Shown: in pieces, positions 44,101 to 51,857 of the stretch
Layout: every line of letters begins with the position of its first letter
Numbering within the stretch: the first letter of the stretch is position 1
Source of the DNA: Oikopleura dioica
Lineage: Eukaryota; Animalia; Chordata
Assembly: GCA_907165135.1 (NCBI GenBank)
Contig: OU015567.1
Span: 12,958,001 to 13,022,000 of the forward strand
Reading direction: 5' to 3'
Length of the DNA: 64,000 nucleotides
Program-made: the position numbers and the translations under genes
Notes under the pieces: model-generated
Databases searched by the model: none
Told to the model about the DNA's origin: nothing
Seen by the model: only the letters and a program-made list of their open reading frames with translations

Positions 44101-47100
44101 TTTCCTTCGAAAGTCTAGGTGGTATTATCTTAGCAAAATCAGCTACCCAGGAAAAGAAGCTCTCCTGCGTATCTGGAAACTGAATACCGCAATCTTCTTT
44201 GGCTCCGAATGTACACTTCGTTTTTGCCTCACATATCCCGTTTTTAATTCTTATGTCGTCAATTGCAATATCCGAAGAGAATGTCCGCCCTCTGACCGCT
44301 GTAAGAACAATTTGGAAAGGACCATTCGATGGTATCACGCTTATTTCAGACTCCATCCACGACTGGCCCTGGTCTCCTGATTTCTGCCAAACGATAGACT
44401 CGACAGAATCAACTTCGTCACGACGTTCCACTTTCAGTTCTCCCATTTGTGCTCCATTCATCATATACTTGAAAGAGAGGCACACAGTTTGACTGATAAC
44501 GCTAGAAACCAACTCGGACTCATCGTCTTCGTTGATTTCCGAAGCTTCGAATAGAAGATAGCGATTGTTTTCATCGACGGAAAATGGCCCAGTTTCTTTG
44601 GATGGAGAAGGCTCATCTGTTAGCTTCCAGTTGATGGAACTCTCTCCGAAGTTCCATGTGCAGAGGCCGTCTTGAAATGTGCAATTTGACGAAAAATCTA
44701 GACAGTTTTGCTCGTCAGAACCATCGCGGCAGTCAAACTTGCCATCGCAGACAAGACTTTTGCTTTAATATAAGGTCAGTTTTATGATTTTCGTCAAAAA
44801 TAAAGAAAATGAAATCAAGGAAGAGAACGCATCATTAGACAAAATATGACCCCTTTCCTTATGCATCTTTTAGTCACATCACAAACAAAATCATCATCTT
44901 CTGTGCATTTTGGCTTTTGCGGGCATTCGAATCCTAGAAATTCCAAGTCTTCATCCTCTCCATACTGGCAATCGACGAACCCATCACAGAAATACTCTTT
45001 CGGGATACATTGTTTGCTTCTTGGGCACATTTCTTCCCAGACCTGGCAGGACTTGGAGCAGTACTCGTCATCCTTCGAGTCCGGGATGCAAACGTCATCT
45101 TGACAGAGGCCAACGGCGCATGGAAAGTCCATTTTTGGTTTGAGCTTCACCATCATCTCTGCATAATCCGGAGCATTGTAAAAGTCAACCCAGGTAATAT
45201 CACCAATTTTTCCAAGCGTTTGGCTAGCGAAAATGATTTATGCTTGGTTATATATTCTCAAAATATTTAGTATAAAAGATACCTAATTGACAACATATTT
45301 TCATCGGACAACGAAGCAGAAAATACTCTCCAAAGTGCCTTGCTTTTAATATCTTCAGCCATTATTTCAAAGTTATCGCCGTTTGAGTCGATTTTCTCAA
45401 CCCTGTTCATCAATGAGTTCCTCCAGCAGACGTCCCCGGTTTTCAAGTCAACGGAAAGTCCATCAATATCGGTATCACCAAGGCTGAACCAAATCATCCT
45501 CTGGCCTTTGCCATTCAAGTCCGACCGCGAGACACTTTCGAGAACGCCGTCGCGAGAGGACCAGTACAGAAGCCGGCGGATAGGATCGACGGCAATAAAT
45601 CGTGGAATTCCATTATTAGAGGTAATAATTTGCTTCGTCGCTTTAACGTTTCCCTTGAACATGATGGAGAAATTAAGCATAAATTTAGAGCAAATGACGC
45701 GGGATTATATAATTGATAGGAATTTCAAAAAATAATCTTTCTTCGCATCATTTCCTGAAGAGCAGCCGAAATAGACGCAACACCGATGGAATACGTCCAC
45801 TGATCAGTAAAATATAAATTCTCTCCATACTTGTCAAGAGCAAGCCCAAAAGGCATATCTAAATCTCCGACAAGAGTGAGGTGAGGATATCCGTTCATTC
45901 CGGTAACAAGGATTTTTCGGTCTTTTGGCTTTGCATAGATCATGTATTTATTCGTCATTCTGGAGATCGGCTCCCAGTTTTCATAGTAGAGAACAGCCCC
46001 AATTTCATCAGGAGTTGTGGATCGAATGTTTGACAAACATTGAACAGCATTGCCCAGGAAAGAAAGAACGCATACTCCTCCAGAGCCGGAAAGTAAAAGA
46101 TTGCGATCTGTGGGATGGTTATGATTAGAGTTAGTCATTTGTCCTGGAAGATTTTTTATCGTCAGAATGATGCTATGATTGATGAAAGTTTCAGCCTGAA
46201 ACTACCAGGCAGAGTTAGTCGGACATGACTAACCAGAGTGGAAATTTTCATGGTCAAAAGCCACAGGAATTCGTTATCCTAACGACGACTAGACGCTCTA
46301 CCCTTCAGGATTTTCACATTTAAATCATACTCAGTAATCGTAAAACCATTCCTAAAACTGGTTTCGTCGGACTGAGAGTAAAGCAAGATTCAACTTTAGC
46401 CGCAAGAGAGCTCACTCCATTTGATACTGTAAAAGTTTTTATCTTATAATGAGCGCCAGGAAGTAAGTTATCAAAGACCATCGTATAGAATTGGCCACCA
46501 AGAGAGTCCTTATCCGAAATCGTCGTGTTGTGTTCGGTCTTTCCAAAAGCAGAAGTGATTGTTATGAAAAAATAATCAAAGATTCCATTTTTAGGCGCAG
46601 CGAGCTTCAACTGGACGGAACTTTGTGTTATTAAACCAATCGAGATTTTCTCGGGCTCTTCAGGTGGCACAACTACTTTCCTCATGTTTGGGACGGAGAC
46701 GACGTTTTTGATTCCGACTTTGGTCATCTCAACTTGATATTGTTGACCCGGGGTCACAAGTTTGAAGAAACGATGATTTTCCATCATACCAGAAGAGAGC
46801 TCTGAAGTCACACTTCTTGACTTGTCTTCCTCAAGAGGAGGAGTGATTGTTAAACGAGCAATGGAATCGTCTTGTTCTTCGTCCCATTTGACTTCAAGGA
46901 ATGGTTCGTAAGTACTCTCCACGCAGGTTTCGGCACGAACTTCTAAGTTCTCCAGGGGATTTGACTCAGTTGAAAACATAATGATAATTGATTTCCCTGA
47001 ATCTCTCAATAAACAGGTTCAAAATCAGGTAAGAATCAAATGTTCATCTCATGAAATTTTGAACCTCATCTTGACAATGGGTGTTATTTCGAGAGCATAT

Positions 47101-48958
47101 GCAGTTCCAGGTCGCAGTCCTTTTATAATCCGTTCGGTCTTTGTTCCTTGCGCCTGTACCAGCTCGCCATGCTCAGGAGTCCAGCTCAGAGCATAATCAG
47201 TGACGAGATTCGAGTTTGCGCCGGCCCAAGTGATCTTTGCCATGGTTGCAATTGGAGTAACCATTATTGGTCCAAGAAGAGAAATGCTTTTCACGTCGGA
47301 AATTGAACTGATGTACGCTTTCTTCAATTGATCGTATTCTAGAGCAGCTTCGATGCCCGGGTAATTTGTGCTTAGCTCGCAAATAGCCGAGCTAACGGAA
47401 GCTCCAGCTAGTGGCAGTTCCGATGATCCACGAAGAGCGATTAAATAATCATCATTTTTTTCAGTGACAGATTTAGCAAGAAGTTTTGGATCGACGTCGT
47501 TATAGACGACGCTGATGATTTTCACGCCTTGTCGTAAAAGTGACTTTCTTTGCTCTAAAAAGCTATCCGCCGAGGGAGATTTCGTGATGACAACAACGAC
47601 TGTAAACTTGTCCGATCTCGATCCAAACTTAGGGTGGCTGATGGCAGTGTTGAGGTAGGAGAAAGCCTTGCCAAGAAAAGAGCGAGTATTCTTCGTTGTT
47701 TGTCCATTTGTCATCTTCTTGAGATAAGTGAGCAACTTTGGCTTGCTTGTTTGCAGCGGGAGATCAATGTTGGCCTGATTGCGATAACGAACGATGGAAA
47801 CATGTGTCTCATCCTTTTTCGAGGTCAATCAAATGTCTTTCTTGCGAAATAAGCAAGCTCATGGTTAGACCCAATCCTTAGCAACGCGCAAGCACTGAAC
47901 AACATTTCGAATCAGATCTTTTGCCTTATCAAAGCCCTGCTGATGGTCCGAAGTATCCACGAGAAAGATCAAATCAATGTCCGCCTTTTGCACGCACCGA
48001 GCCACCACATCAGGAGATTTACAAGTGTTAGGAACATCGCCCCGTGTGAATTTATCCTTGAAAGTTGTCTTTTTCGAAGATAAAAGTTTGATTTTTGGCT
48101 GATCAGCTCAATGTGTAACCAATAATGATGATTTCAAAAAACTTTTTGTGGGGCCGGAAATCGTAAAAAATCTGTAAGTGCAGTTTTCTTCAGCTTATCG
48201 AGACGAGTCGAATGATGGGTTTAGCTCCTGATAACTGTTAGGATTTACCGGTTTACCGGCTGGTTACCGGAAAATACGTTGTCACCGGCCGTTTTTGTTC
48301 TAGAAGTGGTAAACAGATGATCGACCCAGGAAATTGTTCCTTATAGTCGGTTCTACTCTAGGCTAAAAGATGAGGCTCTTATCAATACTTTGAAGAGAGT
48401 TATCACAAAAACAGTAAATTTTACATACATTTTGTAGTTGCTGCACGTTCCTGATTTTTAGTCCCATTTCTGCCATAAATAGTATTTTAGTGATAACTCT
48501 CTTCAGAGTATTGATACGAGCCTAATCTTTGAGCCTAAAGTAGAACTGACTAAAAGGAACAATTTCCTGGGTCGATCATCTGTTTACCACTTCTAGAACA
48601 AAAACGGCCGGTGACAACGTATTTTCCGGTAACCAGCCGGTAAACCGGTAAATCCTAACAGTTATCAGGAGCTAGACCCATCATTCGACTCGTCTCGATA
48701 AGCTGAAGAAAACTGCACTTACAGATTTTTTACGATTTCCGGCCCCACAAAAAGTTTTTTGAAATCATCAATGACCATGGACGTTGGTCTATTACTATTT
48801 TGAGCAACGCGAAATTGGGGCCACTTAGCGGTTCTATCGGTTTCAAGAGCACCTTTTCTAGTAATTAATTATTTTCACCTTCGTCCCTGTGCTACAGTCC
48901 ATCTTCCTGAAAGCAGGAGAAAAGTAGAAAGAAGCGTCCAAAGAGAAGTATTTCCCAT
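35149..48958 (-). CDS. Giant secreted mosaic serine protease (vWA, FN3, YWTD, LDLa, MAM, CUB, SRCR, active trypsin-fold domain, CUB/MAM/LDLa, inactive protease domain, LDLa/CUB)
   Basis: Signal peptide MGNTSLWTLLSTFLLLSG at 48958, vWA IDLIFLVDTS, FN3 pieces, YWTD-like LYFTDQW and LLYWSS, LDLa CDGxxDCxxGxDE repeats, MAM CTFQDGLCTW/CNFDFDMCDF, RIVGG...TAGHC...HDIAI...GDSGGP, CUB domains. Continuity was checked at several but not all junctions, so it could be more than one gene. Confidence 0.75.
48126..48770. mobile_element. Fold-back MITE, ~645 bp, long inverted arms
   Basis: 48126-~48340 is a near-perfect reverse complement of ~48556-48770 (one mismatch seen), with degenerate pairing continuing to ~48408/48491. 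No ORF. Target duplication is ambiguous (AATGA flanks 48129-48769). Confidence 0.88.
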
Positions 48959-49550
48959 GTCTTTGGTTGATCAAACTGGTTGTTTGTGAGTTTTGCCGTC
49001 ACTAGCATCCTCGAAAAGGCCGCATCGGGAGACAACCTTCCTTGTCCTAAAGTTTTTGTCCTTCCGACGAGATTTACCGCCCTCTAGCGATTCGTACTAA
49101 AAATAACCTACACGTCCAGTTCTAGTAACAATCTAAGAATAAAATCGAAAATTCTAGTAACCTTCAAGAATCGATTTCTGTTCCCGATAATCGGGGCCCG
49201 ATTTTTCTGTTAGAAAAATAGTTGAATTAACATTTTCGTGGGAGAATTTTGCACAATATTTTCATACATCAATGGCACTTTTTTGCAGACAGATCACGTG
49301 GATAAAGAACCCGCCGCGTTGTAATCCGCGGCTCAAGATGGCTGGATTATCCGCTCGTGCTCCTTTCTCACTGACCTGATCTTTCTTCAAATGCGTTCTA
49401 TCTTCGTTGCTACTTTTCTTTTGTGATCTCTTTAATTTTTATGCTCTCTTGTTCCGTGTTTATGATTTTTTGATGGGGTTTTGAGAAAATACGATTACAA
49501 AATAAGAAAAACGATCAAAAAATTGAATATGAATGTGAAAGGAAAAGGGA

Positions 49551-50290
49551 TTAATTTGGTGCTTTATTAAACAATTTATCGTATCCAGTATGATTTGGTG
49601 GTGCTGAGGCCCTGTGGGCTCGTTGGCACCACCACCAAGCGTCCGGTGACAGTGACGTCACCTCGGCACTGAGCAACTGGCACGAAGCAGCACGGCACAC
49701 TTGGAAGTACTTGGGAAGATGCACTTCGCTGGACAATCGGCCATTTAGAACTTCCCATACACAATGGTATTTGCCAGATAGGGAAAAATAGGCCTTTTTC
49801 GAATCTGCCTATAATCTATTTAATGGATAAATATGACGAGGAGAATTATTTATAGTTGAGATAAGAGTGCTAACTCTCCAGCAATAGCCAAGTGAAGGTT
49901 GTTTATGATGATGCAAAAGTGATGCTCGTTGTAGTGAATAACAAGTGTTTAGCTATAAATAATTTCGTGCGGACAAATAGACCCTATTTCTAAAGCATTT
50001 CGACCAATTGTTTTTTTGTAACCATGGTTCGGAATCCAGCTTTGGAAGATGGCTGACGAAAAATCGCAAGTTGAATTATTTGGTGCTCATATGAATCGAC
50101 TTTGAGCTGAACTTCATCGAAACATAGACGTCTGCATGAAAATAGAAAATAGAAGCTTTTGCACTAGAAATGCTTGTCTATGGAGTAATTTCCTAATAGA
50201 GCACAGTTTTTTTTGAATGCGGTGCTGCCCCGCAGGCAACAAATTGGCACACCAGCAGAGCACCAGAATCAAGAGGTGTCCTTAACATTA
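49551..50290 (-). CDS. Possible small multi-exon gene of unknown function
   Basis: GC-richer open segment 49551-49780 (…HLPKYFQVCRAASCQLLSAEV…WWWCQR) and phase-compatible open exons near 50030-50290. No family recognised. Confidence 0.25.
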
Positions 50291-50347
50291 CCTTTTGGGC
50301 TGTTTCTTTCTCCTAAAATACAGTAGGAGAAATTATAGAGAATAAAG

Positions 50348-51175
50348 ATGAGGCTCTTCTTTCTTATCAACATCGCTGCGGGTAAGCCAAGGGTTCACTG
50401 GGTTTTTTTTCATCTGTAAGTTGTTATTTTTGGAAATTCCGTGCAGCTCTGCACTTTTTGCGTTATTTTGTTTATATACGCAGCCATGCTCCGAATGACA
50501 CAGGCACGTAGTGACCAGTTTTTGGAACCACGAACTTATTTTAATCGGAATTTAAGCTTGCATGAATGCCCCGGATGGAGGATACGAGAGTGCCGAGGAT
50601 GTGCGCAGTCCGCCGCACGAGATGATTGAATATTTCACTGAGTGCGCCGATGGCCTCGTTGGCGAGATCGACATCATCTTCGTGACGATGAGCCAGTGGT
50701 ACATCGACACCGTCTATAAATGCGACATGAAAACTGCCTGCTGGAAGAAGTCGATCAAGAACAGCGACAACATTCCTCCTGAGATCGATTCTCGCGAAAA
50801 GATGCAAAAAGTAAAGCGGAATTAAATTTCATTACGAAAAAGGATTTTTTCAGATGTTAAAGTGCACCATCGACTTTTTCTCATCCGGATTTGCTGACTC
50901 CATCGACGCACCAGTCTCCAACGAGGACTTTCCTGACACCGCGAGAGATATTCTCCTTCCCCAATTCAACTTCTACGACTACTTCACTACTGCCAACGAT
51001 GCTTTGCCAGAGGGAATGCAGCATGGTGGAACTAATGATGCGGCAATTGAAGATTCTTTTTTCGGCGAACTAATTTACCCACGCTCATATGCTGCTCAGT
51101 GAGTGCTTTTATTTTTAGCTCTTTTCTGATAAATATTTTAGGTTTATTTCTGGCCGCTTTGGAAAACGAAAGTAG
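50348..51175 (+). CDS. Secreted protein (196 aa) ending in RFamide-type signal ...SGRFGKRK*
   Basis: Five GT-AG exons (50348-50381, 50484-50507, 50557-50810, 50854-51098, 51142-51175) total 591 nt in frame. Signal peptide MRLFFLINIAAAMLRMTQA and strong C/G-ending codon bias. Confidence 0.8.
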
Positions 51176-51266
51176 AAAATTATTTTAGAAGATCTCTGTA
51201 GCACCACGATTGTGGCGATCTTTCACTCACAACAATTCATAAGACATTAATAAAAGTTCACAAGGT

Positions 51267-51509
51267 TTATTTATTTGAAATCATGGAAGAGTTTTTTCGA
51301 AATCGCTCTGCTGCAGACTCTCGGAGTCTCTGAATGAAACGATATCTGCGGCAACTTCGTATATTGCGGCAAGGCTTCTGCTCCCTTGATTGAATCTTTG
51401 TTGCTTCGGCTCTAATAGCCTCTTCACAAGTTCTTGAGTAGTCTTCACATCTTATGACAGCAGTCAAGACTGGAGCAAGCAAAAAAGTAAGGAAACTTCG
51501 AAGTCTCAT
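51267..51509 (-). CDS. Small secreted Arg-rich 4-Cys protein (80 aa)
   Basis: Single ORF MRLRSFLTFLLAPVLTA|VIRCEDYSRTC...PCRNIRSCRRYRFIQRLRE..., with AATAAA overlapping the stop codon. Confidence 0.6.
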   Translation of the reverse strand: MRLRSFLTFLLAPVLTAVIRCEDYSRTCEEAIRAEATKIQSREQKPCRNIRSCRRYRFIQRLRESAAERFRKNSSMISNK

Positions 51510-51857
51510 TTTTGAAAAAAAAGTGAAGAGGTTGCTTCTTTTTATAGGCCTTATTGCGCAAAAAGAATCTGTTTTATTATCAAAATAAATAAAAATAATC
51601 TTTGTCCATCTGTCGAGTTTCTCAGAGGAAAAAGAATCATCTGCTCCATGACTAGTCAAATTTTATGATCGCTGAAGAATCTGCGTCAGTCAATTGTAAA
51701 ATGAAATTATGAAGGATTGATGCATTTTTATTTCCTCAACAAAACTGAATACTGACGCAATTGTTTTGCTTTCTTCTCTAGAATAGATGTTAGTTCCCTG
51801 AATTATCATAAGAACATGACCAGTTCGATTTCACTGAAAGGAGCGAAATCATTAAAA

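Follow-up and report, generated by a model that had tools for sequence, protein, structure and literature searches.

The question raised by this locus is whether a small gene of Oikopleura dioica ends in a genuine signal for the formation of an Arg-Phe-amide (RFamide) or in a string of codons that resembles one by accident. The gene occupies positions 50348–51175 on the forward strand of a window of 64,000 nucleotides (the whole stretch of DNA analyzed; contig OU015567.1 of assembly GCA_907165135.1, positions 12,958,001–13,022,000), to which all coordinates refer unless another contig is named. In the initial annotation, made from the letters alone, it was read as a secreted precursor whose last exon of 34 nt appends FISGRFGKRK to the protein. 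Comparison of related lineages demonstrates a conserved protein body behind an N-terminus of the secreted type, and a C-terminal ISGRF-G-KR-K that is under selection and is contributed by this micro-exon. RFamide-type processing to ...ISGRF-NH2, either on a 57-residue peptide or on the whole ~170-residue protein, is proposed as a tentative reading, to which we assign slightly less than even confidence.

The gene was modelled with four exons, all on the forward strand. Exon 1 (50348–50381) starts with the ATG and encodes MRLFFLINIAA plus one base (phase 1), corresponding to the first 11 residues of the public protein CAG5113558.1 and to a putative signal peptide. Exon 2 (50557–50810) encodes a Cys-containing core with four Cys that is predicted to be helical, and exon 3 (50854–51098) an acidic, aromatic-rich half with one Cys, which contains the conserved motifs DTAR-D, FNFYDYFTT and IEDSFFGEL and whose last ~9 residues form a variable linker. 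Exon 3 terminates with CA|GTGAGT and is followed by intron 3 (51099–51141; 43 nt, GTGAGT...TTTTAG). The terminal exon 4 (51142–51175; 34 nt) begins directly after ...TTTTAG| and reads (CA)G TTT ATT TCT GGC CGC TTT GGA AAA CGA AAG TAG, i.e. it completes a Gln codon and continues as Q-FISGRFGKRK-stop. Within the GRF-G-KR-K-stop string (51152–51175), Arg-Phe (51155–51160) stands directly before Gly (51161–51163) and the basic residues KRK (51164–51172), followed by the stop codon (51173–51175). The x-Gly-Lys-Arg sequence is the canonical signal for the successive action of a convertase, a carboxypeptidase and PAM. As had been noted, this end is absent from the list of open reading frames (ORFs), in which the ORF of the third exon ends at 51102; retention of intron 3 would stop the protein at ...SYAAQ (TGA, 51100–51102).

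The tail is present in CAG5113558.1 (Oidioi.mRNA.OKI2018_I69.chr2.g7652.t1.cds), an unnamed public model of 188 aa that corresponds exactly to the four-exon reading. The gene is single-copy in the O. dioica Okinawa assembly (64.28 Mb, 19 scaffolds). The OKI2018_I69 annotation was generated with AUGUSTUS using RNA-seq reads as intron hints (PMC8008620), which is consistent with RNA support for the 34-nt last exon without proving it. The strong codon bias initially attributed to the gene, and the high expression deduced from it, were not borne out: the effective number of codons is 54.8, indicating a weak bias, and the GC content at third codon positions is 0.58, as compared to 0.45 in the neighbouring gene.

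For comparison, exon word searches, which yielded exon-sized ORFs only, were used to locate marine-metagenome and Logan contigs, to which three JGI contigs were added. The fetched contigs represent genomic copies from ~7 separate lineages within the O. dioica species complex, six of which reach the 3' end of the gene; nine contigs from these six lineages were included in the 3'-end comparison. Synonymous sites are saturated between the window and the far lineages (proportion of differing synonymous sites, pS, 0.5–0.8), and the splits among the lineages are therefore deep.

The donor GT and acceptor AG of intron 3 are kept in all six lineages, with an intron length of ~40–45 nt, and the terminal exon reads (Q/E)(F/H)ISGRFGKRK throughout. 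The stop codon retains its position while its identity varies between TAG, TGA and TAA. ISGRFGKRK itself is invariant, although six of its 27 nucleotide sites vary; all of these are third codon positions and all changes are synonymous, an arrangement with a chance probability of C(9,6)/C(27,6) = 84/296010 = 2.8e-4 by our own arithmetic. The tail shows no nonsynonymous change in 20 sites, as opposed to 8 in 19.7 sites for the nine codons upstream of it (one-sided hypergeometric p = 0.0016, own arithmetic), and these last nine codons of exon 3 have diverged almost neutrally from those of contigs L004 and L008 (proportion of differing nonsynonymous sites, pN, 0.41; pS, 0.55). In the deeply diverged lineages, 77–87% identity is retained in exon 4, as against 34–43% in intron 3 and 48–56% in the first 19 bases after the stop codon. 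The conserved entity is therefore the peptide sequence rather than a DNA or RNA element, and the pattern of substitutions shows that the tail has been under purifying selection throughout the O. dioica species complex. Both the RF-G-KR-K end and the junction that creates it (51098/51142) are thus confirmed by the sequence, the public model and the conservation across lineages.

A terminal exon that is not translated, with a protein ending at ...SYAAQ and the 31 conserved bases acting as an element of the 3' untranslated region (3'UTR), is highly improbable given these data. The 3'UTR does contain another conserved block (see below), which would be in keeping with such an arrangement, but an untranslated element would explain neither the confinement of variation to third codon positions and the interchange of stop codons in place, nor the maintenance of GT and AG around a diverging intron; moreover, exon 4 is used in the hint-based public model. 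Retention of intron 3 as the main form likewise appears unlikely.

The motif alone means little, since strings coding for RFGKR occur in the genome at the control rate (302 versus 289); its weight derives from position and conservation. No clusters of such strings were seen among the matches listed, and there was no sign of a multi-copy RFamide precursor. The enzymes that would act on the tail are encoded in the genome. A bifunctional PAM (PHM+PAL) gene is located on the minus strand at C5:4792913–4796164 (Cu2_monooxygen and Cu2_monoox_C, then NHL, on the same strand), and nine P_proprotein matches at ~6 loci point to five or more proprotein-convertase loci, so that the formation of an Arg-Phe-amide on the tail is plausible. 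Two further Cu2_monoox_C loci are found on C4, at 12.418 Mb and 3.930 Mb, the former with dopamine beta-hydroxylase as its best match in the PDB. In the proposed sequence of events, a proprotein convertase would cut after Lys-Arg in the secretory pathway, a carboxypeptidase would trim the basic residues and the PHM-PAL enzyme would convert the exposed Gly into a C-terminal amide, giving ...ISGRF-NH2. The product would be either an acidic peptide of 57 residues, freed at an invariant Ala-Arg (residue 127), or the whole disulfide-bonded protein of ~170 residues with an RFamide tip; in either form, it may serve as a secreted signalling protein or long peptide.

A different product, SYAAQFISGRF-NH2, had been predicted initially, with a single upstream Arg (YPR|S; 51082–51084) as the cleavage site. 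It would fit a classical neuropeptide precursor, with a spacer for its body and the excised short peptide as its sole active product. The RF-G-KR signal required for this is intact and conserved, the amidating and convertase genes are present, and cleavage at a single Arg is known for RFamide precursors. The Arg codon is present in the window and in contigs L006 and L007 only; the corresponding codon specifies Tyr in L003, L004, L005, L008, L021 and L058, i.e. in four other lineages, and the lineages outside the clade of the window read FPYAHVAQ-H or FPYGHVA(Q/E)-H before the tail. The only basic residue of exon 3 that is invariant in all seven sequences is R31 (DTAR|D; 50944–50946), which corresponds to residue 127 of the public protein and lies 57 residues before the Phe of the tail. 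Between R31 and the tail, none of the six Tyr-containing contigs encodes a basic residue. Since the upstream Arg is not conserved, SYAAQFISGRF-NH2 cannot be the conserved product; an extra 11-mer in the Okinawa-type clade is possible. The N-terminal half of the putative 11-mer falls into the nearly neutral linker described above, and the body shows a degree of constraint unlike that of a spacer (see below). Together with the distant orthologue, which has the body and lacks the peptide, these points make a short peptide as the sole active product a poor candidate, and we consider it quite unlikely.

The body of the protein is of the kind described initially, with an acidic composition (30 Asp+Glu versus 16 Lys+Arg over 175 whole codons) and five Cys. 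By eye, the N-terminus consists of MR, a hydrophobic run of 10 residues and AAA|C, as in a putative signal peptide, and is kept in other lineages, with MRLLLLVNFAA as the counterpart of exon 1 in L003, L008, L009 and L019. Exon 2 shows a mean column identity of 92% over six lineages and a ratio of nonsynonymous to synonymous divergence (dN/dS) of 0.03–0.10 with saturated synonymous sites. Exon 3 is 83% identical across lineages and contains invariant blocks such as FNFYDYFTT. The notion that the body is mere precursor spacer is not upheld, given that exon 2 is strongly constrained and is the sole part recognisable in the distant orthologue; as judged by this conservation, the Cys-containing domain of exon 2 is the core of the family. 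AlphaFold2 predicted helices from the exon 2 alignment (predicted local distance difference test, pLDDT, 63), and the model obtained with the full-length alignment was unusable (pLDDT 39).

Database searches were made exon by exon, with CAG5113558.1 as the only full-length sequence used. At E<=10, the full CAG5113558.1 matched no family in Pfam, and the separate exons gave only a chance-level glycosyl-hydrolase match (exon 3). A PDB sequence search returned nothing at E<=10, the ESM Atlas contained no usable match for exon 2 or exon 3, and Foldseek with the low-confidence model found no match in the PDB below E = 3.7. A HMMER search of 1.84 billion representative proteins with an exon 2 profile recovered only larvacean sequences, namely the O. 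dioica cluster and one protein of 86 aa (E = 1.5e-19), and in the collections covered by these searches the gene is restricted to larvaceans.

The gene of this 86-aa protein lies on contigs of 3–45 kb found in marine metagenomes, Tara among them. It matches the gene of the window in exon boundaries and phases, and its exon 2 is 45% identical to that of the window without gaps. Exon 3 carries the Cys and an AR-(D/E)...FNF-DYF motif at the same place, and the N-terminus is of the same putative type (MKEKVLFLLTGCTLA). The gene comes after the same large protease gene with MAM, LDLa and FN3 domains as in the window and in the same order; by tblastx, L022 1–4200 is collinear with 45328–48062, and the gene follows. 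Given the shared exon structure, identity, motif and neighbour order, it is the positional orthologue in another larvacean.

Several observations weigh against the proposed reading. The distant orthologue ends with ...FNDLLNRKGDNSVSKK and a stop codon (...SVSKK), followed by AATAAA ~45 nt later, and has no RF-Gly-basic tail. The body is equally or more conserved than the tail, the reverse of a peptide that is conserved while its precursor drifts, and exon 2, too, contains invariant 9-mers; the invariance of the tail therefore shows function and not specifically peptide signalling. There is no conserved N-terminal cleavage site near the tail, and monobasic cleavage at the invariant Arg127 is made less likely by the lack of an upstream basic residue at positions P4, P6 and P8. 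Few amidated proteins are known to exceed 100 residues. A profile search of the genome with the 7B2 Pfam model gave no match, the protein collections searched held no transcript-derived full-length protein from any lineage, and the lineages compared are only six and related to one another. Orthologues of the receptors for NPFF/GnIH, QRFP, PrRP and kisspeptin have been reported to be absent from urochordates, based on Ciona (Elphick and Mirabeau, PMC4062910); any receptor would therefore be non-canonical, and none is at hand in view of these reported losses. The genome contains ~30 rhodopsin-type G protein-coupled receptor (GPCR) loci, two of which were checked and look somatostatin/opioid-like and serotonin-like, and a brief look at these loci did not identify an RFamide-type receptor.

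The expectation that the tail would be kept in orthologues holds within the six lineages of the O. dioica complex and fails for the second larvacean, whose syntenic orthologue lacks it. The tail is therefore either confined to the O. dioica complex or a feature that the other species has lost. No string coding for a hydrophobic residue, Gly and a dibasic site was found in any forward frame of the 1.6 kb downstream of the distant gene. A candidate located ~770 nt 3' of it, YEYRFGSKKL-stop, was rejected because it lacks an AG acceptor, carries Ser between Gly and the basic pair and lies in the territory of the next gene. A conserved body in combination with a tail-less orthologue implies that the core function of the family would not need an RFamide.

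Alternatively, the protein could be secreted for a structural, matrix or gland role, for instance as a component of the house or the digestive system, with a conserved basic tail that is not amidated. Such a tail could serve as a charge patch that binds a partner of acidic character, or as a short pro-tail from which a furin-type enzyme removes residues; the likeness to RF-G-KR would then be incidental. The conserved and probably folded body is the core of the family, the C-terminus of the distant orthologue is likewise basic and without Gly, the absence of relatives in Pfam, the PDB and the Atlas outside larvaceans is typical of many house proteins, and RFGKR strings are no more frequent than in the control. 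A charge patch, however, should tolerate exchanges between Lys and Arg as well as changes of Ile, Ser, Gly and Phe, whereas all nine residues are invariant, and the exact order Gly-Lys-Arg is what processing by PAM requires. An invariant Gly and non-basic Ile, Ser and Phe beside a freely changing linker fit a recognised end better than a charge patch. Four peptide strings of the protein were absent from 11 supplement files of the house proteome paper (PMC3390340), a finding that argues only weakly against a house protein since the files may not contain sequences. On balance, a non-amidated structural or gland protein is regarded as somewhat unlikely.

Overall, the gene is a real, lineage-restricted and probably secreted protein gene with a selected RFamide-type C-terminal signal. 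Because the syntenic orthologue ends with ...SVSKK and has no Gly-amidation signal, the RFamide tip may be an addition, made in the O. dioica lineage, to a larvacean secreted protein of older origin. A more far-reaching scenario is the recent birth of an RFamide hormone, in which an ancestor of the O. dioica complex captured the 34-nt exon via a phase-2 donor overlapping the old stop region and gained the Gly-Lys-Arg signal, with the tip now signalling through a lineage-specific GPCR or a DEG/ENaC/ASIC-type channel; in this full form, it is deemed unlikely. If the tail is amidated, it would provide the first RFamide-ended secreted product described in larvaceans, as no report on RFamides or amidated peptides in Oikopleura was found in the literature searched, in agreement with the initial statement that no well-characterised precursor of this type is known from appendicularians. 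It would also represent a dated case of one tiny exon bolting such a signal onto an existing protein, in a member of the tunicates, the sister group of vertebrates. Without amidation of the tail, what remains would be an ordinary finding: a conserved and unnamed secreted protein that is specific to larvaceans and whose C-terminal motif is under selection.

Several further elements were recorded in the introns and flanking regions. The protein length of 196 aa given initially requires an additional in-frame exon of 24 nt (50485–50508, forward strand), which is skipped in the 188-aa public model; this micro-exon is an uncertain candidate. A counterpart of it is found in frame, with 18 nt, in L003, L004 and L008, where it has a good donor (GTAAGT or GTAAC); by comparison, the window has a weak GTAGTG donor at this site, and the closest lineage, L007, a GC donor. 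In the distant orthologue, exon 1 connects directly to exon 2 and no such exon is needed. Inclusion of the micro-exon would alter only the end of the signal peptide. Immediately upstream, intron 1 contains a conserved block of 54 nt (50431–50484, forward strand) that consists of the palindrome TGCAGCTCTGCA, a T-rich tract and CAG. This block is 83–93% identical between lineages, like the best coding exon, as compared to 33–49% for the flanking intron in diverged lineages. It could be the acceptor region of an optional micro-exon or a transcriptional or splicing control element.

A second conserved block is located in the 3'UTR (51188–51225, forward strand), reads GAAGATCTCTGTAGCA...GATTGT(A/G)GCGATCTT and may form a hairpin of 6–7 bp. 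It is 67–72% identical in diverged lineages, as compared to 48–56% just after the stop codon, and folds at -8 to -11 kcal/mol; its stems are invariant, so that there is no covariation. A poly(A) signal, AATAAA, follows at 51249–51254 (forward strand), and all lineages whose sequence extends this far have an AATAAA in the equivalent part of the 3'UTR. A promoter-proximal block at 50240–50275 (~75–110 nt 5' of the ATG), reading GCAGGCA(A/C)CAAA(T/A)TGGCACACCAG(C/T)AG(A/G)GCACCA, is common to the window, L003 and L008, and the remaining 5' flank is ~50% identical. tRNA and Rfam scans of 48900–51700 gave no matches.

On the minus strand, an ORF of 80 codons (51267–51509; MRLRSFLTFLL...) lies tail-to-tail with the gene and would encode a small, secreted-looking, basic protein with four Cys; tblastn detected no counterpart of it in any other lineage, including the closest one. 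The sequence of the closest lineage diverges completely beyond ~51285, suggestive of a rearrangement breakpoint immediately 3' of the gene. On the 5' side, 10 codons at 49609–49638, inside a local GC-rich bump (49600–49900), are 90% identical by tblastx to L022 5583–5612 and may represent exon 1 of the adjacent protease gene. In the distant larvacean, an HCN-type channel gene (Ion_trans_N + Ion_trans) is situated between the protease gene and the orthologue (L022 6500–9400, also L023–L026); the window contains no HCN-type channel gene in the 1.4 kb between the protease gene and the tail gene. Elsewhere in the genome, the same RFGKR 14-mer was matched five times within C1:93331–128283 at a spacing of ~8.73 kb, as expected of tandemly repeated units of ~8.7 kb close to the beginning of contig 1; these may be ribosomal DNA.

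When compared with known systems, the gene would by class be an orphan RFamide-type precursor, unusual in that the predicted signal is carried by a conserved protein and added by a terminal micro-exon. Like the oikosins, the larvacean house proteins, it is secreted-type and restricted to larvaceans, with no relatives elsewhere. Granin-type proteins (chromogranins, 7B2 and proSAAS) are acidic secreted proteins of ~20 kDa that contain few Cys and have their C-terminal portion delimited by basic residues; the larvacean protein resembles them in acidity, size, Cys content and basic-bounded C-terminus, without sequence or profile similarity. With the FMRFamide-related and sulfakinin-type precursors of protostomes it has in common the RF-Gly-Lys-Arg unit, which is present as one terminal copy on a conserved protein rather than as repeats, and no FARP profile matched. 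NPFF/GnIH, PrRP and kisspeptin likewise acquire their Arg-Phe-amide via a Gly and basic processing signal, and PrRP31 and kisspeptin-54 are long RFamide peptides, as proposed for the long larvacean product; the larvacean protein shows neither a PxRF nor any other motif of these families and matched none of their profiles. In its architecture, it is comparable to the QRFP (26RFa/43RFa) precursor of vertebrates and amphioxus, which also has one RFamide at its extreme C-terminus, followed by Gly and basic residues, and which yields long N-extended amidated forms and a shorter form via a single basic residue (cf. PMC4062910). There is no sequence relation between the two, as the larvacean tail reads SGRF instead of FxFRF and its body is a conserved Cys-containing domain.

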